A DNA stretch of 64,000 nt from contig OZ316899.1 of the NCBI GenBank assembly GCA_973895155.1, positions 2,007,573 to 2,071,572 of the forward strand. Direction: 5' to 3'. The position numbers were made by a program, and so were the translations under genes. A model generated the notes under the pieces. That model saw nothing but the letters and a program-made list of their open reading frames with translations, was not told the origin of the DNA and made no database searches. Below are positions 38,790-61,692 of this stretch, one piece after another. The DNA is from Marsupella aquatica (Eukaryota; Plantae; Marchantiophyta). The stretch's first letter is position 1. The number at the start of each line of letters is the position of its first letter.

Positions 38790-40282
38790 TAAAGCCTCTA
38801 CTTGCGGACTTGACCTACGCTTGTCCTCTGCCAAGATCTCAATTGCCATGTGCGCCACTAACATTGAGGCATTGTGAGCTTTGTGTAACGCGCAAGGTCG
38901 GGTGGTGGAGGGTTTTTGATGTAGAGGATGACAAGCTCCATCTTGGGTATTGAATTGGAGCTGCAACCAGGGTGCCCTCCGTCAATCGTAGTAAAGTCCA
39001 GCTAGGTCAACCAAGCTTTGAAAATGGAGGTTGTGGGAGCTCCTTACTGTGCTGCAGGTGCTGTTCAATCAACGGAGTAGAGATTGTAGCTATGATCAGT
39101 GTCTGTAGAGCTGCCAGTTGGGTGATTCGATAGTAGAGAAGAGCAACCATAGTGATTCAGTCCTTCTCCTCGTTGCAACCAAGGACCAGGGAGCTGTGCA
39201 TCGCAACGTTGGACCTTGGTGTTGCATTGCTCCACCCACTAGCAGAGACTGGGACAATCACTACTTGTGTTTTGTGCATTATCATCTCTGCCCCGGTACT
39301 CGTTTTGTGCAATGTCCGTCTAGTGCTTGGCACTTGATCCCTACATTGTCGTCTGCCGCTTGGTTGCTTGCAGAAGGGATTGAAGAGATTGGAGGTGCTT
39401 GGTCTTGACATTCATTTTGGGTTTCAGAGTTTAGGAGGACAACTTGCACCATCGCTGACAAGAATGAGCTGCTTGTAGAACAAGAGGGACAAGCGCAAGC
39501 TGCTTGCATAATAGGAGACTAAGGGCAAGCATGAGCTGCTTGCAAAATAGGAGACTGAGGGCGAGCTGCTTCTTTAGGGTAAGAGGGTGAGCTGCTTGCG
39601 GAAGCTGAGAATGTGCATTTGAAAGGCAACAAAGTGCAAGCTGCTACCTGCATGATGAGACTTGGGACCTGCAATGTTCCACATGCTACCTGCGACGGGT
39701 ATGATAGCCATGACAGAAAACAGAAAACAGAAAACCTGTTACCAGGAAATTTTTTGCTGTTAACAGTCAAATATAACTGTTACCAGTAAGCGATTCCCTG
39801 TTACCAGTTTTGCATCAACCATAGCCCTTTGGTCCGAATGAAAAACTACGCTAATCACAGAATTTTTCTTTAGTGAATTAGGTTTAAAACAAACAATTAT
39901 TCTGTGCCATCCGATGGATGAAGAGTACTAGCAATCCTCCCTTGCAACAACATTTTGATCTGGAAGATAACTGAACACGGTATGGGGACTATACTCAATG
40001 AAACATTCATTCAAATATCACTATTCGTCCAAGCTAAAAAGTGAACCTTAGGGTGGGACCCACCACAGAACAAGTGAAGAGTAGTGTCCAAATGAACTCA
40101 ATCAAAATGAGTTCCCTTAAATGGACCGAGTACCGTGACAAACAAATGACAAAACACCTCCTAACGATTTATTTCAGAATAATTGAATAAATGCGGCTTG
40201 AAAGATAAAACATAATGATATCAACTTACACATTTTAAATAAAACACAGTGTAATGCTTACTACACGCGTACATAATAAAAG

Positions 40283-43200
40283 CAGCGCCCGACACTAACC
40301 AAAAAATTCTGAATAAACCAAGAAACATATCCGTTGGTAAAGACAAAATAGTGACTATCCGTTATATTGAACGACCTATATGGAAGTTTCGGCCCCTATT
40401 ATAAGCCATTCAAGTTCTGCCTCTCCAATACAAGCCTGACTTCGCCCACAGTCAAAATTGGTTGGCTACAAAGAGTCGACTCCTCAACCTCAAGTTTGAA
40501 AACATTTATGTACACCCAATATAGATGTTTACAAGGTATGTAGACTTGCCACGCGAATGTCGTAGGAAGAAGTCCTCACAAGAGCAAGCAGGGAAGATAC
40601 AGATTTGCACAAAGTACGTGCTTGGTGATCGAAGGTTCTCATGGGTTCGAATTTGAAATTGCTTTCCAAAAGCATTTCCAGTCCGAACATTCCATTCCCC
40701 ATCCAAACTCATCTCTTCTTGTCGTGCAGACTCCATTCGCTTAGTGTGACCCACAGTGAGATTAGACCGAGGTCTTGAGTTCCTCCCATTCCGACTACCC
40801 AGCCGGACATTTGGTTCCAAAAACCTTATTGTTTCTGGGAACACATTCACATTTATCCTGAGGTCAAACAAAGATGGCGCAGATCGACTCAATCCTGTTG
40901 TTCGGGCTAAGACAAGTCCTTGCTCTTCGAGGAACGTGATTTCAGAAGGAGATAGGTTCGTACCCTTCAGAGCAGGCAAAATTTCAGGAAGAGGAGGAAG
41001 CTGATGAACACCACGATGCGGACGACTCTTATAACAGGTTTGGTTTGGGCAGAACCAAATCATTTCGGAGATCGGTTCGCCCCTAAAGAGACGATGGCCC
41101 TTCACGACAATTCCAACAACACCATTAGATGAATGGAAGCCAACCTTCTTGATACGATTTCAACACTCATCGCGATCAAAACTCCCATTGAGTGTCCCAT
41201 TACACTGGGGACCTGCTCCATACTTGGACGTCCGTCGCAGCTGCCACTGCCCCAGAGGGACATCCTTCTCGAGCACAATCGTGCGTGGAAGTGGATTCTG
41301 AAGTGAGACTGGTGCACTGAGCAGAGGTTTTGTGGATCTTGTTGTACGGGTTGTTTGAGGGGTATTGTCCAGTGAATCAGTATCACCATCTGATGTGTCC
41401 ATACCAGAGAGATTCACCACTCTTGTCATAGGATCATTAGAATTAGAGGGAATGGAGGCAAAGTCAGTTCTGTTTAGGTTTTTCCTTTTCAAACCACAAG
41501 TATTTGGTGTGGTTATGAGAACGGTGTCATGCCGATGGGAGTCTTGTGGAGAGACAGTCCCAGTTGCATGTCCCTTTCTCTTCATTGACTTGGTCACGAT
41601 ATCTCCGTTAAGGGGAGTACTTCTTTCCAAATCAAAGTCCGCTGCGTTGGAAAGAAGCATGTTGGTCGCATCTTCAAATAACCTCGGCGAACCTGCTTGA
41701 TCGGCAGAACGGAACGCCAATTCCCATATAGTTGGTCCCTTTCCTCTGTTCAACCCTTTTCGATATGGACTGTATCCCGCAACTTGAGACAAGGCTCGGT
41801 TTTGGTCCACTTTGCATGCTTCAAAAAGACCAACTTTTTTCTTTGTAGCCCAGGCTTTCATAGACGCATGCCTTGATTCTGACCCTGTACAGTTTGGAAT
41901 CAAGGCACCTTCTTCTGCGCTTTTGCTCTGCCATAGTCCGAATGCAATAATCAGTACTAGCATTGTATTACCAGCGCCCGGCGCTGGCACCGACAAGTAT
42001 TTATAACATACGTGAAATACAATTTAGATTATGATTCTGGAACTTTATGGACATGTTGGACTCAAATACGAGAAAATCGCCTCCCCATTGGTGGGCGGCG
42101 CATCAAACTGGCTAAGGCTAGGGATCTCATAGCTTTAGAACGACGACAGTGGTTTGCTAGGAGTACTGGCAGAGTCACCTCTGTGGCTGCGTTGCTGGTC
42201 TAGGAGTGATAGCTATTGGAAGAGGTCGAATGGGATACCTCGCTTTACCGGCTCTAGGGCTCTAGAAGTTGACATGATGTATGGGTCACTCACATTTTGG
42301 GCCACTAGGTTTAGTCCCCCCTTTTTTTTATTGTGATTCTGGCCTTTGCTTTTGCCGCTGGCCTCCCTGAGGGGTTGTTCTGATTTATCTATGGGGCTGT
42401 TTGCTTCCCCCCGGCCGTGGGGTTTTCGCGGTCTCACCTTTTATTATAAAAAATATTTTCCCAGGAAATACGAGAAAATCATACCAACGCCTGGCGCTAA
42501 TATAAAGTTGATGGAAATGAAAGACAAGAGAGGAGATGGATGTCATACCACTCGAATAAAATTGCCCCACTGGCGCCATCGAACAACCCACCAGGATATC
42601 CAGCTTTGTAGCATCATGAGCTTTCCAGGGACACAGTTTCCTGATTGCCACCAAACCACAATCTCTTGGGACACGCGATACGCTACCACAAACGTTGGAG
42701 CGTTTCTTAGTTTCTCCCAAAGTCTCCGATGTTCTGATTGACATTCTTCGAGTACTCCTTCCTTGGAATGCCGATGGAAAGATTGATAAAAGTGAAATGC
42801 ATCAGAGCGCTCCCTCTCCAGGTCTGGGTGTCCACCAAAAAAAAACATTCCGCACAACATTCCATCCAGCTTGTGCATTGTCCGCCATAAACCCTTGGAT
42901 GACAACCTCTTGTAATCCATTCTCCTTGCAAACCTCAATCATAACTCTCCAAGCCTTTTCGAAAGACTCAGTGTCTTCACCTTTCAACTCGCATGTGAAA
43001 ATTGTACAAAGTGCACAGAAGTAATGGTCATAGACATGCGTGCTAAAAGTAAACCAATCGGTTGTGATACACTGCATCACATCAAAACTGACCCAGGCTC
43101 CTTTGAGTCTTCCACCAGGTTGCATCTGTCTCAAAAGATCCACACTGGAACCGTGACCCTTCGTGGTCATTTTAAAGATGTGAGGCCTGTTGTCTTGACA

Positions 43201-46200
43201 TCCCTGACCCGGGAGCAAATACCTCTGGAGAAACAACAGGTTAATCTTCTTCTGCATTTGCGAGAGAAAATCAAGTTCTTCCTAACGCTCCGACAAAGAG
43301 ATGCAAACTTTTGGGGAGTGGAAAGTACCATCAGAGACTTCCATATTTCAGTTTCTTTGATATCGACCATGTTGTCAACATGTTCGCAGAGAGCTTTCAC
43401 TATGGACCCTGTAGCAGAATTCAAGATCCCAGCTGGTTTTGCCAGAGGATTGGCTTCATGATTTTTTTTAATTAAATCCTCAGCCATCTTCTCCGCACTC
43501 CTACAGAAGGTTTTTCTACTAGATGGTTATGCTCACCTATATGAATCGCCAGGCGGGACATATGACTACATGTTTCCGCATCAAGTAATACTTGCGGGTA
43601 CATATAGAACAAACGGGCAGGGCAGTACTTGACACAAAAAGGAATCTGATCACAATAATGACACACAACACCGCCCTCTTCGATAAAAGATCCGACAGCA
43701 TACTGACCACTAAGCTTTGGAGTACCCTGCCATGCCTTAGCGTTTGCCTTCTTCTTCCTTTGAAAGTACTCGCAGGACTTGTTCCGACATTCAATGAATC
43801 CCGTACAGGTAACCTTACCGAATTGCCAAAGTTTTTTCGGCTGAACGTTCGCGGTAGTTGGAAATATGCGTGTCCAAATGTAGCAATCTTTGGCATGGTC
43901 CATGTCCCTAAGCCTAGAGCCTTTAGAGAGCATCTTGTCAATGGGTGGCAATTCAAACACGACGTTCCCGTTGTACTTAGTTGGCAGACAGGAGACTTGC
44001 TCATGTCTGAAATCACCCGTTGATATGAACCTCGATAACTCGCTATGACCAGTGGATTTGAGTAACGTATCCATTGCACTCCGCCGATACACGACCTCCA
44101 ACTGGTTAGAGCTTCCTGGAGTCTCACCTTTAACGACAGCATGTTGCGGGACTTTCATTTTCAACGTAGGACTTGAAGTGTGATCCCCATCTTCACTAGA
44201 AGAAATCTCGACAACATCAAATGGAACTTGGGGGACACCGGACGGTCCTTCATGTTGTCTTACTCGGAGTGAGTACAAAATCCCCGCGTATAGATGCCAA
44301 AACCGTTCACCATCATCCACATTGAATGTTGCTGCATCTTCGATGTCATCACTGGGTTCGAGCTCTCGAACAATGGCCTCAATATCATTCATCTTCAAAT
44401 CAAATCTCCCGCAACGGTATCTCTCCCGGACCTGCTTGTACGTGTCTTCCATAGGGACGGGGATGGTCACAATATCTCTAGTCCTGAATCGGGATAGAAC
44501 GATGGACCAAGACATTGCATCGAAAACAAATAACGAGGGCTGTAATGTTTCGAGGAAGAAAAGTCTATGGTAATATGGAGCTTATATCAGTCGAACATGG
44601 GAACTTCATGTTAACAGATGCGTTTGTATAAGACATAAAACATAGTCAACATAGGATCCGTTGGCGCCATAAATGATTTTTGTCATTTTTCCCCGATAAG
44701 TCCGGATGTCAGACGCATACATAATGCCAAAAAAGGCACCACAAAAATCTTTAACAGACTCTAAGATATTGTATAGTTGGAACAATTTGAGTAGCGCTTG
44801 GCGCTAACTAAAATGTCTCAAACATAATATGCCCCAAATCTCAATATTCCATACTAGCGCCTGGCGCTAGAATACAAAAACCCTCCAGATATCCATCAAT
44901 ACTATGAAATAATTGGATTGAAATGATCAATGAAAATGTGAATTCTTTTAAAACTATGGATGAAAAATACTCGTTATCACTAGCACCGGGCGCTAGTATA
45001 GAATGCAAGTAATGTTTCCCAAAAACCTTAAAACAATAGACATTTCTTTAAATGTGGGGTTGTTTTGATGAAATTTATGTATTCGAGGCACCATTTCAGA
45101 CCTATTCTATAGCTGTTGTTTTTACTAGCGCCGGGCGCTGCCATGACAATCATCCAAATTATCTACTTCAAGGGAAGTTGTTTATAATAGCGCCAGACGC
45201 TAGTATTCCGAGTGAGGGAGGAAAACGGTCATAATGGTAACATTTAACGGTAACTTCTGAGTTCCGTGTGTGTTATGCTTCTTCTACCGCTTGATTTAGC
45301 TAATTAAGTTCTCCGCATAGATACATTGGAATCCGCCAAACTTACGAACTTCTCGCTTTAATCGAAGAGTTCCGCTGAACTCCATCCTCCTTCTAGAATA
45401 TATTACACGTTGAGAGTTGATTAGAGTTCCATAATTTCATTGTACGATAGTTTGTACGCTTCTGGAAGGAAGACGATGGAGGGATTCTCCTCTTCATCCA
45501 GAGGGTACAGTGTTGTTCCTGACCAAGAGCGAGCTTATTCTGAATCCTCGCAGTCTTCGTTTACTGGTTCAGTTTATACACGTCATGTAACTCGTTCCAC
45601 AAAGTTGTTGCCTCCTACTTTTGTTAGCGCTGTTTTGGTTCCTAAATCTCTACGTAGAAAGATGGAGAACCTTGACATGATTGCGATCCAAGATGTTTCG
45701 GACTGCGCACTCGCGAAGACTGATCTCATCTCAAAACATGTCATGTGTTTTGGAAAGGATTCTCGTGGATTTGACAAGGAGCCGCCTCAAATGCCTCTAT
45801 GCCGATTGGTTCATATGAAGGTGGTTCGTACTTTGCGGAAAGATAGCTCTTCCATCGAGAAGCTGAAAGACTCGTTTTGCAGTATGGGTTACAATTCATC
45901 CATAGGAATGCGTTTCTATGTGCAGCCAACGGATGAGAATGGAATTGTTCTGACCTGTACCCAGGAAATTCGTGAGTCATGGGATCCAATTTGGCAATTG
46001 GAGAACGAGAAGTTTGAGGCTGAATGCGAGGCCGATCCAGGTTTTCTTGTGTTGAAGGATAAGATGTTCTCTGTCTTCGATGGAAATCACAGGTTGTACT
46101 CATGGACGCTTGTTACCAAGGAGAATCCTGACAATCCAAAATACCATCCTCGAGTGCTCTGCACAATATTTAAGGGAGACAAGGGATCTCTTATTGAAAT

Positions 46201-47815
46201 TGAGGCAGCTATGCACACCGTGAATCAGTAAGTTATCGTTCTTTTCCGGTACCTTCTTTGAATCTTGTGAGTGTTCTATTTAAGAGCGCTCGGCGCTGGT
46301 TATAGATAAATTGTACTTTGACTCTAACTCGCTGCATCTCTTTGTGTAGGCTTGGCCAAGCAGTTGTTGAGCCATCCTGGATTCTCGATGCAGATAGAAT
46401 CAAACGAATTCTGGCGCATGACCTTGAGTATTACAGTAAACTGATTGACCCGGCTAATTTCAAGAAGTTTGAGAGCATTCGGCTAAAGACTCGGAAGGGG
46501 TCATGGTATACGAAGAAGATGCCACAGGAAGCTCTTGTTTACATTCTATGTGAGAATAAGATAAAGTCCTATTCTCACCAATTCAAGCTTGACATGGAGG
46601 CAGCCGAGGCCCAAGGGAGTCCCTGGTCGGTGGACGAGATTTCCAAACGCCATGCGGCCATGATGAAGGACGCAACCAAAGACTGGGCAGTGAAGTCCTC
46701 AAAAATTACGCCCTTGTTAAGTCCTGAATTTGAAGATTTTCTTAGTACATGTGCAGAAATGTATGTTGTCATAGAGAGAAACAAGAGAGAGAAGAAGCCT
46801 GATGCCGTCGTATGTACAATGGACCGCGCCCAATTGTTCACTGCTGTTTCTGCCCTAGACCCAAAGTTGCGGAGCATCCTACTTGTGGCACATTGCAATC
46901 CTGAGCTGCGGAGACAGTTTTTCCACCCGGCAAGTGTTAACGATGACCCAGTCAAACAATGGTGTCATACTTGGATCACTTGGAATAGTGTAGAGGGAAT
47001 TGTTGTCGGCATGTTACATTCATGTCTGCGTGAAGTAGAGCAAACGATGCCTGCGACTAGATTGGAAGAGTGGAATTGTGGTTCGTTTGATGTTCTTGTT
47101 CAGTTTGTTACAAATGAATTCAAGAGATATGGTGATTCTGTGAAGAGTAAGTTCTTTCACACTATGTGGCCTTCAAAGTGTCCAGACAAAGAAGACTATA
47201 CCCAGAAAAACCAGAAGCGGCTAAAAGGTATCTTTATAGGTTCTACATGCACATGGAGGTAACCAAATCTGATTACTTCTGGGCATATCCTGCAGCTTTC
47301 ATGAAGTGGATTACAATAAGTGAGATGACACCATAGCTGATTTGTACTCCATGTACCCAGCGGAGGGCATATTTCCTCCAAGACCTACGACAGAATGGGA
47401 GAGAACTCACTGCCCCTGGTATCTAGATACAGATAGATGGGATTCTCCTTTTGATCAAAGGGAGAAAGATGCATTCCATAAGCTTTCAAAGTCCCACATA
47501 CCAGCAAAAATTGTGTCCGACATGAAGCAGGGCCTGCTAGACGATGTAGACAAGTCTGCCACTGACTTGCAAAGTATCTGTGAAACGACTATTGTTCATG
47601 TGGACCGAAGTCGCAAACCTCGAGCGAAAGCAAAAGCGGAGTTAGCAGCACCAAGCGAGTCAACGAAATCTGGGAGGAAAAGTGAGTATAGTGTTCCCTA
47701 GTTTGGCCAGTGCTTGGCGCTGGCTTGAACTGTCATGCGAATTCACATTTCTTTCTACATTCCTAAGCCTTTGTTGTAACCTAAGTGATTTGCATTTGGT
47801 TAGCGCCTGGCGCTA
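40283..47815. promoter_or_regulatory. Dispersed palindrome family A, TAGCGCC-N-GGCGCTA (11 copies in cassette A)
   Basis: Copies start at 40283, 41971, 42485, 44792, 44854, 44979, 45126, 45188, 46284, 47706, 47801; 44854-44870 and 47801-47815 are perfect. Regulatory role is inferred. Confidence 0.8.
40400..44515 (-). pseudogene. Mutator-like transposase A: Ubl/PB1-like, WRKY/GCM-like Zn domain, DDE core, Cys-rich domain, SWIM
   Basis: KVTCTGFIECRNKSC..CHYC..CPAR..HIGEHNH; WVSFD (D1); GFMADN (D2); DAFH; NCTGSESRHAS (E); FPACSCEDF (SWIM). Split by frameshifts and an intron; left end approximate. Confidence 0.8.
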
Positions 47816-49243
47816 GCTTGTTTGAATACTCAGGATTTACTTGTTCTAACTAGGACCTATTGGTAATTTAGGAGGGAGGAAGTCTAATACTGCGGAAACA
47901 GGAGATACTAAAGTGGATGCTACACCTGAAGTTTTTGAGGCAAACACCAGAGCTCGATCGGACCCCATTACTCCTGTCGACAAGGGGAAGGTAATAGTTC
48001 CGGTTGACGCCACAAGTACTAGGAAGAAACGAAAGAGAGCTATCGAAGGTGGACCTTCTTCAAGGGAGAGTGTTGCAGCATCTGGTGTCCAACGTGAAGT
48101 TGGAAACTTCAAAACTAGAGTGTCTCGTCATGCCATGGTTGAGACAAGCATATCCGAATTTTTTGACTCCACTTTCAACAAGGGGGAAAAACCTGAATGG
48201 GTTAGTAATGTGGAGAAGTGGGGGAAGGATCTCGTTAAGTCGGGATATAAAGAGAAGGGTGTTGTGCGGGGAGGAAAAGAAAGATCGTATGGAGTGGATG
48301 CGGGTTTCATTTACCTACCAACCGGGTTCAAACCAACGATCATAGATAAGAAGGTTCCTAAATGGAACACTCCAGATCACTCCATGGCTAGATCTTTTTT
48401 CAAGTCCATGGATCCATTTCTATCAGATGATGGATTCCTTGCAATTCTACACAATGGGGAGTATGATCCCATGTCTCAAGTCATTGTTGCCTATCAGGAA
48501 TCGAGAAAATTTCAGTGCATATGCACACATAATGTTGTAATGTCTGTCCCGATGTACGCGGCAAAGACAGACCGTCAGGTAATCTTGTACTCTTAACTAT
48601 GTCGCATTTTGAAATATAACTCATTTAACCTGGAGTTGCCAACTGACACTTGGGATTGCTTTTCGCAGATGTTTACCCTCAGGCTGGACATATTGGTCGA
48701 ATTAATGGGAAATGCAAAATTTCCAAAGACCCTAAATTCCGTCCACTCTCCATCAGTGAGGACCCCTCGGTCACCAATTTGATCGGACTCCCTTCTCTCA
48801 AATCCGATCCATTCCCGCAAATGGAGTTTTCTGGAAATGCTCGCCTATCTATTGGGTTTATGCAATCTGTCATTGAGCTTGTCACCCGACCTCGTGATAT
48901 TTTTATGGATTGGACCGCTGGGGCTGGAAGCTCCTTCATTGCTGGAGACTTCTCGGGGAGGTTTGTGCTCAAGATAGAACATAGAAAAGAATTTATTGAA
49001 ACCACTTTGAAGGTTTTCATGGATTTGTTGTCTCCCAAAGAGATTGCGGTTTTACCTCCACCTATTCCTATTGCCGACAGAAAGAAGCGAGATAAGCTTC
49101 GGTCGGTACTCAATTTTGATTCTGATGATGAGTCCAGTGAAGGTGGAGATGGAGAGGAACAAGGTGCAGGGGACTCGGAGGAGGAAAAGGAAGAACCTCG
49201 TCGATCTCCTGATGAAACCGATAGTGATGACTCTTCCGAGTAA
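45476..49243 (+). pseudogene. ParB-like / N4-N6 DNA methyltransferase-like fusion gene, copy A (4 exons, frameshifted)
   Basis: MPLCRLVHMKVVRTL..LKDSF..GY..FDGNHRL (ParB/Srx-like; DGNHR at 46079); C-terminal VDAGFIYLPTG..W..LSDDGFLAILH and RLSIGFMQSVIELVTRPRDIFMDWTAGAGSSFIAGDFSGRFVLKIE; GT-AG introns 46228-46349, from 47682 (acceptor uncertain) and 48579-48668. Confidence 0.8.
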
Positions 49244-49575
49244 TGTTCATAAACTCGTAAGCTTCTTTCTCCATTCCCGTCAATTTATAACATTTCTGTG
49301 TTGTTTTGGAGAAAGGCACATAACTTCCTAGATTTTGTTTGATCAGGTCAGAGTGGAATGCGAGGAGATGTTTAAAATTGCAAAGGAGGGTTGCTAGACA
49401 CAACATAGAAACACCAGAAAAACCTTTTGTTCTTCCCTCCTATGCAAAGAAAGCCGCAAGGAAAGCCGAGAGTACAAGGACGCTTTGCTGAGAAAACAAA
49501 GGTCTTCGGTTACGAAGGGGTGTTGACAGGAAGTTCATTAAACATCCTTGTGTTGATGACTTCTCCCGCAACCAG

Positions 49576-49603
49576 TTTAGGGTCTAGGGTTTAGGGTTTA
49601 GGG
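49576..49603 (+). repeat. Short telomere-like repeat (TTTAGGG)4 inside the giant element
   Basis: TTTAGGG TCTAGGG TTTAGGG TTTAGGG. Confidence 0.8.
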
Positions 49604-51642: not shown

Positions 51643-54600
51643 ACTAGCAATATCGCTAGTATAGAATTGCCTCTACATTTCAGATCAATCTTTGATGTGT
51701 TCATCTTAGATAATCTTAGAGTATTACTGCAACAACTTCAGGGAACACTTCCCGCCCAAGAACACATCCTAAGTTGATCAGACTAGCGATCTTGCTAGCA
51801 AAAAATTGGCGTCATTTTAATGATCAAACCGTGAACTCTATACATACTTGTAGATAGGTTAACACGGCTGGAAGTCGGATGTTTCTGTCAGGATGTAGCA
51901 GACTTCCTAAGACTAGAGAGATTGCTAGCCATAAACAACAAACTCAAACACCATAAAAGTTACCATTATGGACCTCGCTAACATTATGATTCACTCGGTG
52001 AAAACAGATTGATATTTGTGAAACCACAAACTCGAGTAATCCATCCCACCACCCTATAATTAACATCTCCAATAAACGAGTAGTCCCCTATCTGTAACGG
52101 AATTAAACTCCTCACTTCCCCAACAGTCAGAATCGGCTGTTTCACAAGGTCATCCTTCTCCAGGTTGAGTGAAAACTTGTTTAAATACACCCACAGCAGA
52201 TGTTTACAAGACATGTATGGTTTCCCTCGTGTATGCCTCTTATAAAAGTCTTCACAAGAACACGAAGGGAAACAACAGATTTGCACCCAATATGTGTGCG
52301 GAACTTGTGAATCAGTCTTGTGAGTGGCGATCAAGTATCTCCAACCCCATCCATTTCCGGTAGTTACCTTCTCATTTCCGACAACTCTCATGTATTCTTG
52401 TGTAGCGGAAACGATGCGCTTGAGCAACTCTGGAGTATTGCTGAAACGTTATCGTGCACCCTTACCATTTCGGGTTTTCAACCGACGTTCCACATTAGTT
52501 AGATCAATTCGTTTGGGGAATGAGTTAACATCAATTCGTAAGTTGACCCGATTGGGGGACGGGAACTCTCCAACTTGATTTGCATCCACATAGGAGAGTC
52601 CACTGATCTGGAATCCTAATCCCAACAGAAACTCTATCTCGGGATGGGAGAGGCAAGTCCCACGCTGAACCTTGAGCGACTCGGGTGGGGGGGGGGTAAT
52701 TGAGCTAGAGTTCTGCGTCCTCGGCTCTTGTGACACTTATTGTTAGGACAGAAGTACAACAACTGGCGATGTGGAGACAATAATCGCAACCCGTGAATGG
52801 CGACTCCAACAATTCCCCCTTGCGCGGACTTACATCTAGTCTCCTTGATGAGATTTCTACATTCATCTCTTCCAAAAACGCTTCGGTCAACCGACCCGTT
52901 GCAAACAGGTCCAGCACCTCTACCGCTCCGCCTGAGATGCCAGGTCCCATAAGGAACATCAACCTCTCGGATGGAAGGGATCCTTTGGGGGGCATCCCGA
53001 TGGTCATCCCCGACATCACACGAAGGTTGAGTCCCCATTTTCTCGGTATCATTGATATTACGACTTGCATCATCACCATCGTCATCTGAAATATGGATAA
53101 CTCCAGCAGAACAACCTCCGACAGGGGTTGCCAAAGTTGTATTATTTGCTATTTCTGGGTCCGCAGAAGTCTCCGAAACATTGACGAAGCAAAATTCAGA
53201 ATAGAGATTACGCCTTTTTAGTCCTGAAGGAGAAGTTGTTGTGCGTGACACCTTGTCACGTCTGTGGGAGTCATTCGCGTGGATTACAGCTGAAGCTTTC
53301 CCTTTCCTCTTCGTGGATGTTGTTCGGAGATCGCCATGTAATGGAACTGTTCTATAGAATTCATACTTAGCTGAAGACTCAAGCAAAAGATTTGTTGCCT
53401 TTTTGTAAGCATCCATGGATCCCATAGCATCGGCGTTCCTATATGCTAATTCAAAAATGGTCGGCCCCTGGCCTCTGTGAACACCTTCACTGTAGGCAGT
53501 AAAAGCAGCAATTTGCCCCGCAGCACGATTCTGGTCCACCTCACATGCTTCAATCAATCCCACTAGTTTCTTCATTTGGCAGGATCGCATGGATGCATGG
53601 ACTGATTCCGCTCCAATACAATTTGGCATCAAGGCTGACTCCATTGCAGTTTGCGTCTGTGAAAAAGCAGTCCCCAGTCAGACCTGATATGCTAGCAAAA
53701 ACAATGACGTCAAAGAGAAATGAAATTGGACACTTACAACGCGGATGAAGTTCCCCCACTGCCTCCACCTCACGACCCACCAAGATAACCATCCTTGGAG
53801 AGACTTCAATTTCCCAACATAGCAGTTTCCTTCCTTCCACCAACGATGGATTTCGTCAGCAACACGGTAGGCCTGAACATATGTTGGTGCTGTTCTCAGC
53901 CTTTCCCACAGTTTATAGTGCTCTCGATGGCGATCTTCCCGAATACCCTCCAATGTGTGACGACGAAGAGATTGAGCAAAGTGAAAGGCGTCACTGTGCT
54001 CCTTCTGTGGGTGACGGACACCTCCAAAAAAACATTTCAAATGGCGATCCATCCAGCCTCGACATTATCGGCAATAAATCCTCCAATGAGTGGGTCATGC
54101 ACGTCATGATCAGAGGCAACTAATCATATATCTCCATGCTGTTTCAAGAGATAAGGAGTCCTCCGCACGGAGCTCACAAGTGAAGATGGTACAAAGGGAC
54201 CTGTAATTATGGTCGTACACATGGGCGCTGAAAGTCAGCCACCCAGTGCTTATTCTCCGCATTACATCAGAACTGACCCATGCTCCTTCCAGCTCACCTC
54301 CACTCTTCATCTGCCTGAGAATATTGACACCAGAACCTGGGCCATTTGTACTCATTTTGAAGACATGAGCCCTATCGGTCTTGCTCCCCTGGCCAGGGAA
54401 AAGGTACCTCTGAACGTAAGGAAAATTATTCCGTGCTTGCATCTCACGAAGAGAATCCAACTCACCTTGTTTTGGGTTATCCGTTTTCACGCTCTGGAAT
54501 ATGGCCTGGAATTTCTCAACAGTGGACACAACCTTCATCGATTCCCATATCTCTCTCTCTTCTTCTTTTGATAGTTCTGAAGAAGACTCTGGATGCAAAA

Positions 54601-57600
54601 GAGAAACCAGGTTTCCTATAGACTTGTTAAGAACACGCCCTGGCGTACACACGGGATTCGCTTTATGAACACCAAAAACTATCTCCTCCGCCTGCTTTTT
54701 TGCCAATCAAGATTTCCCTTTCCAAACAACGTGGTCATGGAAACCCATGTGAACAGCCAATCGAGACATGTTTCGCAACATTTGACTCAAGAGACAGCTT
54801 AGGATAGACGTACAAAAGTTTAGCCGGACATTCACGGATGCAGAGAGGCCTCTCCTCACAGAATCCGCACACCAACCCTCCTTCCTCCACAAGCTCACCA
54901 AGATGAAACGGCTCTGTAAATTGTCCTTTCCTCGGAAGGAAGAGTCATTTTTTGAAGCGGTGTGCTTCAACTTTCTACAGACCAGATTTTGACATTCAAG
55001 TACACCGGCACATCTGACTTTTGACACAGACCAGTGATTGCAAGGTTTGAGATTAGCTGAAGTTGTGAGAAGTATCGTCCATGGGTAGCCATCATTATCC
55101 CTATCCATGTCCTGAAGACCATATCCTCGACGAAATTGACCTTCGACCGGAGGAAGCTCAAAAATGCAATTTCCGTTGTATGAAGTGGGCAAAGTCTGCA
55201 CTTGAATCTCCTTCCAATCGTTTCCCCTGTGGAAATATGCCCAACTCGCTTGACCCAGTAATATTGAGGAAGGCATCATATGCACTAACTCGATAAAGAA
55301 CTGGATGAGATTGAAACTCGTTTTGAATCATTGCTTCAAAAACGGATTTCTCAAAAGACTTTGTCGACACAGAAGAGAGATCCCAACCCACACTCTCAGG
55401 GGAGATGTCGATAATTTCTGGTACTGCAGGTGACGGGCGAGTCGGGGATTCTGGATCGGAAACATTGATATGTGCAATGTCATCCTTACATGAGACTAGC
55501 TCTATAGCTAAACCACACTTCAGGTCCCAAGCTCTCTCTGGCAATATTCCTGAACCATTATCCGACACCTCATGACTTCTGGATCCATTCCGAGAGTAAA
55601 GAACGAACAACTTCCAGATGAAATCATCTTTCAAAAGCCCAAACCTCGATGAGAGAAAAGACTCCTTGACAGAGATAATAGTATTCTCCGGAACATCTAG
55701 AACAACAACATCACCCGTCGTCTTTCTCTCGATCACAACCTTCGATCCCAATGAAGACATGCTGACAGTTTTGGACATTACAGTCTACAACAATCCTCAA
55801 ATGTGAGATACTTTACTCCCTTCTTTCTCCAAATACATATGAGGAAACGTGCTTGTGTAGGTGTTGGACTCAACGTATTTATTTAATAAATGCCTCTTAT
55901 TCCCGTTATCTGACCATTATTTTGTCTTATATGACACTATTTATGGAATGATAAAGCTAGCAAGATTGCTAGCTCAATGAACCAAGTAAAATGGTTCAAA
56001 ACCTTACAAAACACCCTTCACGAGTTCATGGATTTAGTGATCGATTTTTGGCTAGCGATGTCGCTAGCAAAAACAGTTTCTCATAAGAGGCCATTATGAC
56101 CAATTATATCCATTGGAATTGGTCAACGGGTACCTATATGTCAACGGTACGGTACAGTACCGGACACCTGTCTCTTTGTCATTAGATACTTTTCTTTCAG
56201 TTGTGAGTTTGGTGGTTCGTATTTCCGGAAGTACATGTATACCTGACGGTGTCTGAAAAATGATTGTGAGGAGAGTCGTATAGAATATCTGTATCTCTTT
56301 TCACGACCGAGCGCTGCATTCAGGTGAAAGCAACAGACGAGGGTACGATTCTGTCTTTGACTGGAAGATCAATTCTCGGGTTTCTTTATGTTCGCAAAGC
56401 GTGTCGCCCTCGACCTTGACCTGTTCATACCCTTATCACTTCACGGACCCGCTGATGGAGCCATTGTCTTCACCCGAGAGCTTGTCATCAGTAGGATCGT
56501 TCAAGTCAGTCGAGTCAAGCCAAAGGGAGACAAGGTCTACAGTGAACAAGAAGGCGCTCCAGGCGGGATTGAAAACACCGAGGAGGCCCAAGATGGTGAA
56601 CCAAGTAGATGTTGTGAATCCTACGTTTCAACCTGGAGCTTCATAACCCTATTCTGTTTCATCAATCGCCATCTTTTCCCTTTTGGAAATGACGAATTTG
56701 GATTCCCCCTCGCTCCTCCGAGGATTCCCCTTTGCAGAATGCAAAACATGCAGATCGTTTGGACCTTGCAAACAAACTTGACTGCGATTGAGACACTCAA
56801 GAATGAATTCCGGACGCAGGGATACATCAAGGATGCGCCTCAATTTTACGTACAAATGACCGGCGAAGATGGCCTTGTCTAGATGTGCGACGATGTGATT
56901 CGAGAGTCGTGGAATGACATGTGGATTCTTCAGAATGAAGAATTCAAGAGGGAATGTGATTCTCACAAAGCTTTCAAAATTTTGAAAGACAAAATGTTCT
57001 ATGTTTTCGATGGAAATCATCGTCTGTACTCATGGATGCAGCTTGCGGACGAGAATCCCCATGATGTCAAATATCATCCTCGAGTTGTTTGCCGAATTTT
57101 CAAGGGTGACAAGAACTCATTCGTTCAGATTGAGTCGGCGATGCATGCGCTGAATAGGTTTGTTTCTTTTCCTTCAAGCTGTGAATTGTATATAAAATTC
57201 TTTCAGTTCCTCTTGTTAGCGATCTCGCTGACCTGTTTCTTTTGTTCAGGTTGACTCAATGTCACGTTGAGAATTCTTGGGTCCTTGAAGCAGAGAGAGT
57301 CCAGAAGGTGCTCAGTAATGACCTTTCTATATACAAAGATATCATCGATGCAGACAACTACAAACTTTTCCAGCAGAAGATGGCAAATATCAGGAAACCG
57401 GCTTGGTATTCGAAGAACATGACACTCGATGCCTGCACGTACATTCTGTCTGCTGCTAATATTGCAGCGCAGATGGAAGATTTGAAGAAGAAGTTCCAGT
57501 TGAAAGAAGCGCAAGGAGAACCTCTTTCAAAAGCTACGCAAGACATGGCAGTGAAAGATATGATGAAGGAGCAACTAGCAGATTGGAATGTGAAGGTGCC

Positions 57601-59427
57601 AAAGATTGGACCTCTCCTGAATCCTGAGTTTGGTGACTTTTCCAGAAGTGTGTTGAGATGCACAACTACTGCAAACATGAGAGGAAGGAGGCCCAACGAA
57701 CAGACAATAAAGGAAGGGGTAATGTGTCATGTGGTCTTGATCGTGCGAGGCTATTTACGGGTGTCTCATCGTTGACTCCGCAGCTCAGATGTGTACTCCT
57801 CGAGGCACAATGCAGACCTGAGCTTCGCAAGAAGTACTTCCACCCTGGTCAATTCTCGGACAGCGAAACAAAACTTTGGCTTCACCGATGGGCTGTATGG
57901 GAGCAGGTTGAGTCAATTTGTTCTTCGCTCATGTTTGAGATTATTTCAGAGATGATCCCAACTGTTCCAGATGCAAGGATCCTTACTTCATCTGAGAAGA
58001 CAAAGCCATCGCTGATCCTTGACATAGAGGAGGACTTTGAAGATTTCCAAACGAGAGTGAAATCTCGTTTTTTCAGACAGATTTGGCCACCAAAGTCGGG
58101 TGAGAAGATTGACATCTCACTTTTTTGGAGGAGGGCGAAGAGATATACATATCGTTTTTTTGTAGATAGAGAAGTTGCTGACAAAACATATTGGTGGTCC
58201 TATCCTGCTTGCTTCTCGCCTTGGATAGCAGGAGTGAAAGAGGATCCAACCTCCGTTAAATATGGAGAGTACTCGATGTACCCATGTGAGGGAGTGGAGG
58301 CTCCAAGGAAGATGAGTGAGTGGGAAGTCCTTCACTGTCCATGGTTTTTAGAATCAGACAAATGGGCAGTGACATTTGACACAGCAGAGAAGGCAACATT
58401 TCATATGATAAATCGAGGCTTGATACCAGAGTCGTACATTACAGAGTCCAAATTAGCTCCTGCAGAAGCCGAGGCTGGCGGATGTGAGGCAATGGAGAAA
58501 GTTGTTCTTGGTGTAGCTGCCATTGTCGACCGGAGTAGATCAAGGAGACCTTGGAAGGTGCCGGTGAAGGACACGTCCAAAGATGGATCAGTCTTGTCTG
58601 GGAAGCAAAGTAAGTCTTTTTCTCCTCTTTTTTTCATACCTCATTTGGAGTAATTTTGTCTCAGTCACCTGTCTAACATTAACATGTTTTTCAGAGAAGA
58701 GAAAGGCTGCAGCCTCTGGGAGTTTGAAGAGTGGGGCGGATGATGGAGAAGAACCCAAGTCTTCTGATGTTGAGGTCACAACAAAATCTGTTGTGGACCT
58801 AGGTTCAATCAAGCGTTTAAAGAGGAAGCGCAATGTCCAAATTCTCTCCGACTCGGATGAGGAGGAAGCATGCGTCGCGCAAGGAGTAGCACAAATGTGT
58901 GGTCTTAAGAAGGACGGTGAGAGGCATTTCTTGGCAAAGAGCAATCTCACGGAAACTGCAAACTCAATTAGCCAGAGGAAAGTAAGACCTCCCTGGATGG
59001 GCAATGCGGATCAGTGGTTGTCTGGAATGAGCAAATCGAGCGAACACCCAAACACCGTGATGATCAACGGAAAACATTATGCTGGAATTGGTGCTCACTT
59101 GGGTTTCATATTCCTTCCCACGGGTCATCAAACAAGCATCACAGACCGGGAGGTCCCGAAGTGGAATGTTTGGAGTGAGAAATTACCATATTATTTCTTT
59201 GGAGTCATGCGTTCGATGCTTGCCGATGATGGTTTTGTCGCAGTTCTTCACAGCTCTGACTATAACCATATGAGGCAAATTTTTTCTACCGTCGAGCAGA
59301 AGAACAAATTTAAACATGTCCGACAGTATTCGGTTTTGCTTTCATCTCCTTTGCATCAGGCAGATATGGACATCGAGGTAAGATATCCGCAATAGTTTTT
59401 GTGCAAGTTTTGCTAGCGAGCTCGCTA
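51643..59427. promoter_or_regulatory. Dispersed palindrome family B, (C)TAGCRA-NN-TYGCTA(G) (7 copies in cassette B)
   Basis: Copies start at 51643, 51783, 51913, 55955, 56051, 57215, 59414; 55955-55974, 56051-56068 and 59414-59427 have perfect arms. Regulatory role is inferred. Confidence 0.8.
51984..55778 (-). pseudogene. Mutator-like transposase B (paralogue of A)
   Basis: Ubl-like N-terminus; KVRCAGVLECQNLVC, SRLAVHMGFHDH; WVSSD (D1); GFIADN (D2); DAFH; NCIGAESVHAS (E); SWIM CSCEDF..CKHLLWVY. Confidence 0.82.
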
Positions 59428-59977
59428 ATCAAAAGTGCACATTTCTTACATATTCTCATTTTCAATTCAGGTGGTTACTCTCATTATGGATGCCTTCTGC
59501 AAGGTGGAATTCTTGGCAAAAGTCCCAAAACATACAGGATATGTTCCAATGACTTCCTCGGAGGATGCCCGCCATAAATTGATGTTGAGTGTTTGCTACC
59601 CAAAAATTGATCCCAGTCCCAAGGCGGCTTTTGCAGGTTCCAATAGATTGTCAGTTGGGTTCATGCAAGCTATAATGGAGATCCTTACTTTGCCAAAGGA
59701 CATTGTCATTGACTGGACTGTTGGAGATGGAAGTGCTTTTGCCGCTGGGGAATACGCTAGGAGATTTGTTATGGGTGTTGAAGATCGAGACATTCTTCAT
59801 CTGTGTGCGCAAAAAACTTTGGCAAGTGTGTTGGATAGACATGCCCAGAAGTTGAAAGGGGCCGCAGACCCAAAAAACGATGATCCCAATGATGAAGGGT
59901 CGGATTATGAGTTCACCATCCCAGGAGATGATCAGGGAGGACCTTCAGACGAGAAGGATGAATTCGACCTAGAGTAA
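56401..59977 (+). pseudogene. ParB-like / N4-N6 DNA methyltransferase-like fusion gene, copy B (4 exons, disrupted)
   Basis: IPLCRMQNMQIV..LKNEF..GY..FDGNHRL (57009); LGFIFLPTG..W..LADDGFVAVLH; RLSVGFMQAIMEILTLPKDIVIDWTVGDGSAFAAGEYARRFVMGVE; introns 57158-57249, 58610-58694, 59378-59470 at the same positions as copy A; true start may be slightly upstream. Confidence 0.8.
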
Positions 59978-61692
59978 AGCACTTGGCCTTTGATGTAGAA
60001 CTCCCTATTTGGCGTTTTTATTTTGTTTGTAGAATTTTTGGATATGTAGTATTGATCCGATTCTGGTGATTTCTTCAGTGATAGGCGTTTGGATTGGTTT
60101 TTGGAGGAGAGATTCCGTCTTCGGAAAGAAATCAAGGATCATTTTCTTGTGACCCCTGAGAAGGGATTTGCGCTTCCATGCTATGCTGAAAAAACTGCAA
60201 AGGAGGTTGATGAAGCGCCCGTCGTTTTGACTTGGGAGGGGAAAGGTCTGCGGTCAGTGAGGGGTGTTTGGAAAGCCCTTTACTGCCCTCAGTTCATAGA
60301 TGATGAGGCTGGGACTGTAGCACAATATGTTGACGATTCGGCTGAGAAGACTGATAGGGAGTCGAGTAGCGATCCTAGTAATTCCTCAGATGATTTGGAA
60401 TCAGAGGATTCTCAATGACTCATGGTCAATTTCAGATGCAATCTCATTCCAAAAGATATTTGTCATACCAAAGTTTTATTAAAGATGGATTGTGAAAGGT
60501 TTTTTGACCTGGTTTTGTTCATAATGATGATGCCTTTTCATTCAGTTCAGTGTAGTGAAGATCTCAATGTTTGCATTTGTGAATATTTAAGTATCTGCAT
60601 TTTTGTTTTCCGTAACTGTTTCACAATATATATCGACAATCTTACTACCCTGAAGTTACGCACAAACTTGCCTCGCTAGCCTGCTGTCCTCGCTAGCAAA
60701 ACTCCTGTTTGCTCGCTTAATAGAATACCTCGACTGTTCCTATTGATGGTGTACTGCCAATCGATAGGAGAGTTCAAGAAATGTTTGGGCGAGTTGACTT
60801 TAAGGACAGTAACATTCCCAATGAAACTTATACGAGGGCAGTGCGTCGGGGTCCTTCTGAGAGATACATTCAATTGCGTGGTCTTGGATTCAAGAAAAAT
60901 TGGAGGAGAGAAGCGGCAAGAGTGGAGGATGATTGCAATTCTGAAAGCTAGATGCAATCACTTATTTGTTGTTCCTCCCATTTTTCACGAAGAACGGCAT
61001 CACATTGTTCAGTTTGGTGATCACTTTAAGCTAGAGCCGAGCGCTGCTTAAGCTCTTTTGATGTTTCGGGATGGAGTCGCCCTTGGCTTCGTTGTTAGGG
61101 TTTTTCCCGGATGTTGTCTTCAGGAATTCCATAGTTTTTCCTGCAGTTGTTGGCTAGCGCCCAGCGTTGCTTTTGTTTTACTGGAAATCCTCAGCCGGGG
61201 TCGACCGTGGCTTCTGTATATCAGATTTCTAGGCCTGCAGGTTTTAACTTATATGTGCATTTTTTGGACCTGCGCCGAACGCGTTATGTACTTTGCGATT
61301 ATATATGGCAGTTTTATTTTTTCCCTGCGCATTTTGACATATATTGGTCTCGGATTTTGTTTATCTCAATTGTGAGACGGTTTTATTTGTTGTAAATACA
61401 TGATTCCGTCTAGTCCAATTTCCTTTCACGCGAATTTAATCGTCTTGATTTCTATACCAGTAGTTTGAAATGCATCTTTCGTCCACTTTTTTCATGATCA
61501 CTGTTCACCGCTACCCAAACACTGTTCATTGGTAACAGTTTCTTTTTGCTGATAACAGTAATTGTTTGCTGTTATTGTTATCTGTTTGCTGTCGTTTGTA
61601 AATTCCCCCTGCGACCTCCACCTCAAAGGTATGACCTGGATACTTTGTATGCTTTCTTCAGCCAAAGATGTCCCCAATGTGCTTTACACCAC

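Follow-up and report, generated by a model that had tools for sequence, protein, structure and literature searches.

The interval 39697-61607 of the window (the whole 64-kb stretch of Marsupella aquatica DNA analysed here) carries two transposase genes and two ParB-methyltransferase-like genes, which raises the question of whether these 21.9 kb are one mobile element, and what the second gene might do for it. The interval is a single insertion of a Mutator-superfamily (MULE) DNA transposon, old and no longer active. As a whole, a dead MULE insertion of a two-gene design, with a proposed role of the accessory protein in self-recognition, is in our judgment the likely explanation.

One pair of ends, two diverged units

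The preliminary description claimed a perfect 8-bp flanking repeat, GGG/CCC termini and imperfect inverted ends, all of which we recovered (Table 1). The two copies of CCTGCGAC directly abut GGG (39697-39699) and CCC (61605-61607). A third copy is present at 47050 and the number of copies is about that expected by chance, hence the weight rests on the placement of CCTGCGAC at both termini. Local alignment of the 200-bp ends as an imperfect inverted repeat scored 82.5, compared to 43.2 +/- 6.7 (maximum 64) for shuffled ends (z about 5.8). Of the four copies of the motif CTGTTACCA in the 64 kb, three lie at the left end and one, in reverse complement, at the right end. The left terminus can be aligned to the reverse-complemented right end, and also to the left end of a small relative at 38456; since this relative has both outer ends in common with the element, the two are ends of the same family. 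An empty site was not found within the window. To its left, the element is bordered by a degenerate repeat with many ACCTGC-like motifs.

Table 1 Features of the element and its immediate flanks (positions in the window)
Feature	Position	Strand	Remark
Left 8-bp flanking direct repeat CCTGCGAC	39689-39696		candidate target-site duplication
Left terminus, GGGTATGATAGCC..., (ACAGAAA)x3	39697-39810	+	subterminal repeats: three CTGTTACCAG, one CTGTTAACAG
Gene 1, unit A: Mutator-superfamily transposase pseudogene	40417-44515	-	fold evidence from relative P0161
Five A-type palindromes TAGCGCCnGGCGCTA, unit A	44792-45202		clustered between the diverging genes
Gene 2, unit A: ParB/Srx-fold, helical middle, beta-class methyltransferase-like	45440-49243	+	
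A/B junction	49244-52088		TAGGGTC x4 repeat; 40-bp tandem repeats at 49575-49819
Gene 1, unit B: second, diverged transposase pseudogene	52089-55778	-	
Two perfect B-type palindromes GCTAGCn6GCTAGC, unit B	55956-56068		between the diverging genes
Gene 2, unit B: ParB-fold and methyltransferase-like paralogue	56388-59977	+	
Right terminus, ...CTGTTTGCTGTCGTTTGTAAATTCCC	61490-61607	-	subterminal repeats TGGTAACAG and TAACAG
Right 8-bp flanking direct repeat	61608-61615		copy of CCTGCGAC

Two collinear units, A and B, lie between these ends, each with a minus-strand gene 1 and a plus-strand gene 2 that diverge, as had been claimed. Their proteins are 30-64% identical per segment, and they share intron positions and phases: in gene 2, the introns 46228-46349 (A) and 57158-57249 (B) are both in phase 2, while 48579-48668 (A) and 59378-59470 (B) are both in phase 0, in agreement with the claim of a spliced second gene. 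All four genes are pseudogenes, with frameshifts or stops in each.

The liverwort Riccia sorocarpa harbours the same gene pair, flanked by target duplications of 10 bp (GTGAAATTTA) and 9 bp (CCTTGATCC), in elements of 13.5-15 kb with a single pair each and with ends (GGGGG.../...TCTC) related to those of the window element. Compared with these relatives, the 8-bp candidate duplication is among the shortest of the family or falls below its range. The claimed 21.9-kb element stands as regards its single pair of ends, but the 21.9 kb consist of two diverged units, and the Riccia relatives are single-pair elements. The two-unit form most likely reflects fusion with, or internal uptake of, a related element that has since lost its own ends. 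It is unlikely, in our view, that two related single-pair elements inserted side by side or nested, their inner ends having eroded, so that the interval would not be one mobile unit and the outer CCTGCGAC match would be due to chance or to a locally repetitive target. The single-pair organisation in Riccia, the merely 30-60% identity of the units and their different palindromes, a junction of about 2.8 kb (roughly one right flank plus one left flank), the ACCTGC-like repeat to the left and the third CCTGCGAC are compatible with such a history; however, CCTGCGAC lies exactly outside both termini, these pair as inverted repeats, and the small relative at 38456 has both outer ends. Moreover, neither a recognisable internal terminus in the junction nor an inverted repeat or nested duplication inside the element was detected.

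The transposase and the linked second gene

The transposase of this family is a protein of ~1200 residues with an N-terminal zinc finger, an RNase-H-like DDE core with DxxH, and a C-terminal SWIM finger. In unit A, gene 1 retains the N-terminal Cys/His zinc finger, the D...D...DxxH...E core and a SWIM-type CxC...CxH, and has a long intron (about 41931-42545); its lesions are a T9 run near 42845, where the frame requires T8, an in-frame stop (41160-41162) and a frameshift near 40545. In unit B the SWIM motif CSCEDFYKRHTRGKPYMSCKH is intact, and the segment encoding the second catalytic D (about 54049-54120) has lost the frame and contains a TGA. Evidence for the fold comes from P0161, an intact relative 41-61% identical to the transposase pieces of the window, of which residues 200-690 were modelled with AlphaFold (core pLDDT 80-96; the model does not include the last, E-bearing exon) and searched with Foldseek. 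In Swiss-Prot the model matched FRS5, FRS11 and FRS10 (E 3e-9 to 5e-8), the FB-NOF element protein, K. lactis alpha3, FHY3, FAR1, ZSWIM1/3/9 and IS256-family transposases; the best match in PDB was the IS256-family transposase of ISCth4 (E 5.5e-5), and Hermes was matched at 0.025. Language-model look-alikes fall into MULE, ZSWIM, FLYWCH and FAR1 clusters. None of the Pfam families MULE, SWIM and FAR1 reached E 0.01 in the ORFs of the window or the long homologues. By the modelled fold of this relative, gene 1 is a transposase of the Mutator/IS256 superfamily, consistent with the earlier assignment.

Gene 2 diverges from the transposase gene at all independent loci examined, i.e. units A and B, a Logan contig (L001) and two Riccia loci (L003 and L005), which upholds the claimed linkage. 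The Riccia locus tags of the pair are consecutive or almost consecutive (008989/008990, 001606/001607, 023877/023878 and 000299/000301). Homologues of gene 2 are also present in Adiantum ferns. Like the target duplications in Riccia, the hundreds of contigs 90-99% alike that four sequencing runs from two organisms contain speak for mobility. The accessory protein of the family has ~1200 residues and comprises an N-terminal ParB/sulfiredoxin fold, a long helical middle and a C-terminal methyltransferase-like domain. In unit A the two domains are encoded at about 45722-46227 and 48200-49100, and three 1-nt deletions relative to the family occur at 47218, 47323 and 48692; unit B has an in-frame stop (56880-56882) and a frameshift near 57650. 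A form lacking exactly the 90 bases of intron 48579-48668 was found in four of four sequencing runs, their type (DNA or RNA) being unrecorded.

The claimed ParB domain is corroborated by structure modelling. The model of 45722-46228 has a pLDDT of 94.7, and 34 of its 36 top PDB matches are ParB, Noc, KorB, PadC or sulfiredoxin, the same families being matched in Swiss-Prot, albeit with weak Foldseek E-values (0.004-0.5). VIA-align superposed the model on ParB CTPase domains with Z 8.0-8.4 over 93-99 residues (rmsd 2.7-2.9), a Z of about 8 being, according to the notes of the tool, attainable also by non-homologous proteins. By sequence, Pfam ParB_N stayed below threshold everywhere (none at E 0.01 in window ORFs and long homologues), and a profile of 60 ParB-like sequences found no ParB in PDB. 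No HTH or other module for DNA binding was recognised in the helical middle part.

The methyltransferase part of the claim holds for homology and not for the catalytic motif. A profile built from window and homologue pieces matches the beta-class enzymes M1.HpyAVI (5hek; E 4.2e-6) and CcrM (6pbd; E 1.1e-3), while a single window ORF gave E 0.009. The motif I-like DxxxD(W/F)xxGxG(S/A) is kept, but the DPPY motif is substituted in each homologue examined: in place of the catalytic (D/N/S)PP(Y/F/W), the liverwort and fern homologues have D(L/M/F)P(T/S) and the window genes (Y/F)LPT. Because of this substitution, "methyltransferase" probably denotes the fold and not the activity; the domain is most likely a DNA- or SAM-binding module. 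An active N6-adenine/N4-cytosine methyltransferase, targeted by the ParB domain and marking the palindromes of its own element, as proposed for algal proteins, seems to us improbable. The homology and motif I would agree with it, as would the conservation of the substituted motif IV from liverwort to ferns, which suggests function, and the similar published reading of an Ectocarpus protein (PMC12477816). Nevertheless, the aromatic residue of motif IV is missing in six of six aligned sequences, the window lineages have lost its D as well, and no window ORF or long homologue matched Pfam N6_N4_Mtase at E 0.01.

Palindromes and a proposed function

Each lineage examined has its own reiterated palindrome of 14-29 bp in the intergenic region and introns, and the palindromes vary together with the lineage of the element. 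Besides the clusters in Table 1, A-type palindromes occur at 41972 and 42485 (gene 1 intron) and at 47801, and B-type palindromes inside a gene 2 intron (59412) and in the junction (50478, 51643, 51782 and 51912). The A-type has nine matches in the window (0.05 expected), eight of them in unit A, and the B-type nine (0.94 expected), seven of them in unit B. Palindromes are also found in flanking DNA, both in unit B and in the Riccia elements, where they fill both subterminal flanks; the window element has none in its subterminal regions, over 700 bp at the left end and 1.4 kb at the right end.

We propose that a dimer of the accessory protein would bind the palindromes of its own element in the manner of ParB on parS, and that binding may mark or shield the chromatin or DNA of the element, serving self-recognition or anti-silencing; alternatively, the bound protein might help to assemble the transposition complex. 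We infer both the binding and all functions downstream of it.

ParB/Srx-fold proteins include CTP-dependent clamps and nucleases, and the DGNHR motif of gene 2 resembles the DGxHR form of the nuclease and sulfiredoxin branches. The domain might accordingly be a nucleotide-dependent clamp, nuclease or synapsis factor that acts on the palindromes in transposition and has no epigenetic role, which would suit the subterminal palindromes of Riccia, located where a transposition cofactor would act. We regard this as doubtful, since in the window the palindromes cluster between the genes and in introns, away from the subterminal regions, and in structure the domain is closest to CTPase-type ParB N-domains, not to nucleases. 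Gene capture is frequent in MULEs and gene 2 of the window copy is a pseudogene, yet a captured host gene or horizontally acquired passenger, Pack-MULE style and with no role for the element, is scarcely credible, because lineages of only ~35% identity, from liverwort to this genome, have retained the pair together with its orientation and introns, the reading frames are largely open at 30-60% identity, and the palindromes change along with the lineage.

Comparison with known systems

With phage and plasmid ParB_N + N6_N4_Mtase fusions, gene 2 shares the combination of two domains, ParB being likewise N-terminal, and its methyltransferase-like domain is nearest to the bacterial beta-class enzymes (M1.HpyAVI and CcrM). 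Unlike those fusions, gene 2 is spliced, eukaryotic and linked to a transposase, has a substituted catalytic motif, and carries a helical insert of ~450 residues between the domains. ParB-HTH plus Dam proteins, which likewise combine the two domains with ParB first, are known from chlorophytes and chytrids (PMC4738411); the chlorophyte proteins belong to another, M.EcoKI/TaqI-like methyltransferase group, whereas gene 2 is beta-class-like.

The VANDAL MULEs of Arabidopsis, also members of the Mutator superfamily, encode a dedicated anti-silencing protein, VANC, that binds short motifs which have built up in non-coding DNA of the family it belongs to and have diverged between families; compared by description, and in the accessible text of these sources, VANC has no ParB or methyltransferase fold assigned (PMC5735166, PMC10398659). 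A land-plant Mutator element, an accessory protein and lineage-specific sites are common to both systems. The VANC motifs are short and not known to be palindromic. What the two systems share appears to be a logic and not a family origin.

The preliminary description knew of no described family with this architecture, but ParB-methylase accessory genes opposite a transposase have been published for brown and red algal transposons. In red-algal Plavaka, the accessory genes PAG2 (N6-adenine methylase) and PAG3 (ParB N-domain) are accompanied by inverted-repeat arrays adjoining the ParB gene, homologues of these genes are carried by Chondrus Mutator elements, and accessory genes move between transposon superfamilies, Mutator included (bioRxiv 10.1101/2025.02.11.637652). 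Accessory proteins with ParB and methylase-type domains and inverted repeats nearby are likewise seen in the window; in red algae, however, two genes are involved, one joining ParB to a 2OG oxygenase and the other the methylase to a SET domain, with the CACTA/Plavaka lineage as the main carrier, whereas gene 2 encodes one ParB-methyltransferase-like polypeptide. Sola1-1_Ec32 of Ectocarpus is a giant DNA transposon of 21.5 kb with an accessory gene opposite the transposase strand that encodes ~1100 residues with ParB-like and N4/N6 DNA-methyltransferase domains, a protein that its authors propose to bind and modify its own element (PMC12477816). Giant size and an opposite-strand accessory gene of this kind are shared with the window element. 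The differences, the accessory proteins being compared by description, are a Sola1 transposase in a brown alga versus a Mutator family in land plants, and a palindrome code, which is present in the window family and not described for Sola1-1_Ec32 in the accessible part of that report (PMC12477816). The design was thus described in algae in 2025, and the present element establishes its occurrence in land plants.

Ends of the element and its transposase

The octamer CCTGCGAC stands at 39689-39696 and again at 61608-61615, abutting on the outer side the GGG with which the element begins (39697) and the CCC with which it ends (61607). A third copy lies in the window at 47050, a number close to chance expectation, so that the argument for a target site duplication rests on the placement of the octamer at both termini. 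The flanking repeat is perfect over 8 bp (8/10 if taken as 10 bp), against a target-site duplication of about 9-11 bp usual for the Mutator/MULE superfamily. The ends are only imperfectly inverted: the first and last 200 bases of the element align as an imperfect inverted repeat with a local score of 82.5, against 43.2 +/- 6.7 (maximum 64) for shuffled sequences. They are made up of (ACAGAAA)n and AACAG runs together with the 9-mer CTGTTACCA, which occurs three times in the left end, once inverted in the right end and nowhere else in the window. The repeat, the GGG/CCC termini and the inverted ends are thus in the sequence as the preliminary description had given them. The left flank (39498-39690) is itself repetitive in a degenerate way: 1.9 copies of the 36-bp unit AGCTGCTTGCAAAATAGGAGACTAAGGGCAAGCATG are followed by ACCTGC-like motifs, and the 8-bp match therefore loses slight weight. 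The empty site that had been proposed as a check did not emerge from a search for paralogous copies within the window: no copy spans the junction, and repetition is limited to the right flank from 61701 on. The right flank (61701-62600) is 84-94% identical to 25295-26318 and 29107-30152 of the window; judging by this repetition, the element lies in or beside another repeat, itself possibly an LTR.

Gene 1 begins with a Cys/His finger (C-x5-C ... H-x-H), and the core read from alignments runs WVxFDV ... GFMADNA ... DAFHF ... SESRHASMK, the catalytic residues being assigned by pattern. The D, D, (C/D)xxH, E signature and the CxCxnCxH SWIM finger are both present, the C-terminal CxC...CxH motif of unit B reading CSCEDFYKRHTRGKPYMSCKH; the Riccia sorocarpa homologues P0176 and P0183 bear a SWIM-type label in UniRef. 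In Pfam scans covering 19 window ORFs and 23 homologues, gene 1 did not match the MULE (PF10551), SWIM (PF04434) or FAR1 (PF03101) models (E 0.01-10 for the window ORFs, 0.1-1 for the homologues); the divergence of the family exceeds what these models capture. A structural model was made of residues 200-690 of P0161, an intact relative encoded by one ORF of 690 residues with 43-61% identity to the window pieces (core pLDDT 80-96; the last exon, with the glutamate, is absent from the model). Compared to the Swiss-Prot models by Foldseek, it retrieved solely members of the Mutator/IS256 clan (E 3e-9 to 1e-3). FAR1-related sequences 5, 11 and 10 were the best (FRS5, FRS11, FRS10; E 3e-9 to 5e-8), and further matches included the FB-NOF element protein, alpha3 of K. 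lactis, FHY3, FAR1, ZSWIM1/3/9, and IS256, IS1081, ISRm3 and other IS256-family transposases. The top PDB match was the IS256-family transposase of ISCth4 (E 5.5e-5), Hermes, a hAT transposase, being about 500-fold weaker (0.025). Language-model look-alikes of gene 1 agree with the Foldseek results, and we file gene 1, on the model of this relative and with reference libraries free of KDZ and Zisupton, in the Mutator superfamily; the Mutator-like DDE transposase of the preliminary description is borne out by the aligned signature and by these fold matches. A hAT affiliation, considered for the 8-bp duplication, was rejected by the fold search; KDZ and Zisupton were likewise considered, the libraries holding no references of either.

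A ParB fold joined to a substituted methyltransferase-like domain

Gene 2 of the window and its homologues matched no Pfam family, ParB_N (PF02195) included, and neither sequence nor profile comparison of its ParB part with the PDB gave a match. A profile of the N-terminal domain retrieved 409 cluster representatives among 1.8 billion proteins, and 60 of these formed the alignment from which the domain (window 45722-46228) was modelled with a pLDDT of 94.7. Among the top 36 PDB fold matches of this model, 34 are ParB, Noc, KorB, PadC, pNOB8 ParB or sulfiredoxin, and the Swiss-Prot models give the same picture. VIA-align scored it against CTP-bound ParB domains with Z 8.0-8.4 (93-99 residues, rmsd 2.7-2.9) and against Arabidopsis sulfiredoxin with Z 6.5, all 89 residues being covered. 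These scores are moderate; given the consistency of the match list and the DGNHR motif, a ParB/Srx fold is the clear reading of the model, in agreement with the ParB-like domain proposed earlier. The middle region of about 450 residues, the place where ParB proteins have the helix-turn-helix for reading parS, has no PDB match and weak look-alikes only.

The C-terminal domain did not match any Pfam family of the N6_N4_Mtase type. M1.HpyAVI, an adenine methyltransferase of the beta class, is matched by one window ORF at E 0.009, and a profile built from the window and homologue pieces matches M1.HpyAVI (5hek; chain residues 72-227) at E 4.2e-6 and CcrM (6pbd) at E 1.1e-3. The motifs stand in beta-class order, a motif IV-like segment being located upstream of a motif I-like one, DI(V/F)(I/M)D(W/F)xxGxG(S/A), at the C-terminal end. 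The catalytic (D/N/S)PP(Y/F/W) tetrapeptide is absent from gene 2 and from every homologue examined: at the DPPY position, which was placed by position outside the HMM alignment, the Riccia and Adiantum proteins have DLPT, DMPS, DMPT or DFPT, unit A has YLPT and unit B FLPT. The methyltransferase claim stands, then, as regards beta-class homology and a spliced gene, but not as regards the catalytic tetrapeptide. The substituted motif is itself conserved, which suggests a retained, non-canonical role of the domain.

Relatives, two units and decay

Two sources account for all named homologues: the liverwort Riccia sorocarpa and ferns of the genus Adiantum, the fern sequences being homologues of gene 2. 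The diverging gene pair recurs at two Riccia loci, L003 and L005, and on the Logan contig L001, and in several more Riccia pairs the locus tags are consecutive or almost so. L004, an ENA contig, has an intact transposase gene of this family; the contig is short upstream of it, and nothing recognisable as a gene 2 homologue was seen there. The elements at L003 and L005 are complete and single-paired, with dozens of palindromes spread across both subterminal flanks and the intergenic region; the L003 transposase gene contains the stops TAG and TGA. Their termini are related (GGGGG(C/T)(T/G)AGTAA(T/C)ATATCAGCC... and ...TCTC), the ends being about 71% matched, and both are flanked by duplications (see the table). 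From these two elements it follows that the family transposes with MULE-sized duplications and that a single gene pair is the normal complement of a member. The stretch 44600-50500 is covered, in four public sequencing runs from two organisms, by 800-1700 short contigs (90-99% alike), and the family is accordingly abundant in those organisms. In the P0025 cluster, three proteins, one of them P0158, the accessory protein at full length, are automatically named 'trimethylguanosine synthase' in UniRef, probably a misnomer. The whole window gave no match to Rfam.

Coordinates of genes, introns, lesions and related elements (window positions for units A and B, locus positions for Riccia sorocarpa)
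Feature	Unit or locus	Coordinates	Strand	Detail
Gene 1 matches, A vs B	A	40417-44515	minus	six-frame comparison
Gene 1 matches, A vs B	B	52089-55778	minus	six-frame comparison
Gene 2 matches, A vs B	A	45725-49470	plus	six-frame comparison
Gene 2 matches, A vs B	B	56658-60211	plus	six-frame comparison
Gene 2 intron 1	A	46228-46349	plus	GT-AG, phase 2, after ...AMHxxN(Q/R)
Gene 2 intron 1	B	57158-57249	plus	GT-AG, phase 2, after ...AMHxxN(Q/R)
Gene 2 intron 2	A	48579-48668	plus	phase 0, inside C-terminal domain
Gene 2 intron 2	B	59378-59470	plus	phase 0, inside C-terminal domain
Gene 1 lesion	A			T9 run (frame requires T8)
Gene 1 lesion	A	41160		in-frame stop
Gene 1 lesion	A	near 40545		frameshift
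Gene 1 lesion	B			stretch around second catalytic aspartate out of frame, with TGA
Gene 2 lesions	A	47218, 47323, 48692		single bases absent; (nearly) all related contigs have an extra base there
Gene 2 lesion	B	56880		in-frame stop
Gene 2 lesion	B	near 57650		frameshift
Riccia element	L003	2360-15851		flanking duplication 10 bp, GTGAAATTTA
Riccia element	L005	1101-16018		flanking duplication 9 bp, CCTTGATCC

The copy in the window is a decayed two-unit composite. Six-frame comparison of its halves gave a fully collinear series of matches with 28-64% identity per segment, and the positions and phases of the gene 2 introns are common to both units. The duplication is old, since at the DNA level a repeat between the units is recognisable over just one stretch of 51 nt. 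A form without exactly 48579-48668 occurs in each of the four public runs containing the family, runs which are not taken as evidence of expression. All four genes of this copy are broken. Three independent transposase copies are damaged at one and the same codon, that of the second F of NVFFGG directly behind the second catalytic D (T9 at ~42845 in unit A, T7 at ~54070 in unit B, TAG at 6383-6385 in Riccia L003); P0161 is intact here, with NVFFDG. The damage is probably due to a homopolymer hotspot, and recoding may be another cause. A programmed frameshift at the T-run was rejected as the main reading, for unit A has one T too many, unit B one too few, and P0161 is unbroken.

Unit B looks like an internal acquisition, as far as can be read from the sequence. 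That A and B are instead two separate insertions, framed by an octamer that matches by chance, is improbable: neither internal termini nor inverted repeats nor a nested duplication turned up in a search for features that would split A from B, and both outer ends are combined in a non-autonomous relative of about 350 bp (window 38456 to ~38806). This relative, which begins GGGTATAACCACCGTGCCAGGAAACAG and ends ...CTGTTTCCTGGCACAGTGTAAAGCC, aligns with the left end of the large element from base 1 and has about 250 bases of the right end in common with it, so that the outer ends look like those of one family. It contains one A-type palindrome, TAGCACCTGGCGCTA, at 38640; a flanking duplication was looked for around it and none was found.

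Downstream of gene 2, a stretch conserved between the units (49333-49470 in A, 60074-60211 in B; 35% identity over 46 codons) lies about 100 bases past the stop; it may represent an additional exon, a short ORF or a conserved 3' element. At 49575-49819 four copies of TAGGGTC, loosely plant-telomere-like, are followed by 40-bp and 16-bp tandem repeats, and contigs from three of the four runs (X2-X4) depart from the window sequence exactly at 49576.

Lineage-specific palindromes and comparison with known accessory systems

Each unit has a palindrome of its own. Of the A-type, TAGCGCCnGGCGCTA, the window has nine copies at up to 2 mismatches (0.05 expected). Unit A accounts for eight of these, with five in the region separating the diverging genes and one or more in an intron. 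The B-type, GCTAGCn6GCTAGC, also occurs nine times (0.94 expected), seven copies being in unit B at corresponding places. The first intron of gene 2 contains a degenerate palindrome of its unit's own type, AGCGCTCGGCGCT in A (46270-46290) and TAGCGATCTCGCTGA in B (57215-57232). Other loci have their own versions: GGCTAGCGGnnCCGCTAGCC at L004, GCTAGCGCCGGGCGCTAGC at L002, TAGCCAGCGTAACGCTGGCTA at L001, TCCGGCGAGnCTCGCCGGA and CCAGCGGACnCCGCTGG at Riccia L003, and CCGGCGGACnTCGCCGG, in about 25 copies, at Riccia L005. Dyad symmetry is preserved through these differences between lineages, as would be expected for sites read by a dimer.

The accessory protein may read the palindromes of its own element. 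We tentatively propose, as a possibility that we consider less likely than not, that the ParB-fold/dead-methyltransferase protein and the lineage-specific palindromes would form a co-evolving self-recognition code of land-plant MULEs, a eukaryotic counterpart of ParB-parS. Such a code would let each transposon lineage mark or protect its own copies only, and units A and B, each with its own palindromes, would be two orthogonal codes on one transposon. Several natural variants of protein and palindrome exist, so that the pairing of protein with site is open to direct testing in binding assays. Few transposons bring along an accessory protein of their own that binds or modifies DNA, and these are the best handles on how mobile DNA evades or exploits silencing by the host. 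For annotation, the family accounts for many 'hypothetical' or misnamed proteins of Riccia and Adiantum, such as those automatically called 'trimethylguanosine synthase'.

The preliminary description knew of no described family with such an architecture; a counterexample is found in an Ectocarpus transposon survey (PMC12477816), which reports a transposon protein of 1104 residues, ParB-like with an N4/N6 methyltransferase. As described there, the Sola1-1 type has ParB-like and N4/N6 methyltransferase domains in one protein, opposite the transposase, and gene 2 conforms to it. Accessory genes with ParB and N6-methylase, common to Plavaka, Zisupton and Fanzor elements and to Mutator elements of Chondrus, are described in the Bostrychia genome paper (bioRxiv 10.1101/2025.02.11.637652), and fusions of ParB-HTH with Dam were noted earlier in chlorophytes and chytrids (PMC4738411). 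No land-plant report of such a transposon was found in the literature searched, and the paper on the Apopellia genome is silent on all these features. In outline the preliminary reading holds; the element is a variant, borne by Mutator in a land plant, of a transposon accessory system that was described only recently, not a new category. The reach of that system is widened to land plants, the pair being present in Riccia and in the genome of the window and gene 2 homologues in ferns. For algae, the report of the ParB-methylase accessory gene dates only from 2025; here, the catalytic motif is substituted in all homologues examined and the palindrome is lineage-specific.

For the red-algal PAG3 and its inverted-repeat arrays, site reading was inferred in the same way (bioRxiv 10.1101/2025.02.11.637652). 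The putative reading of palindromes also parallels VANC and the family-specific motifs of the VANDAL elements of Arabidopsis (PMC5735166). If the proposed code is real, it would be, beside VANC, a second system by which plant Mutator elements target themselves sequence-specifically, one that evolved independently and has prokaryotic ancestry.
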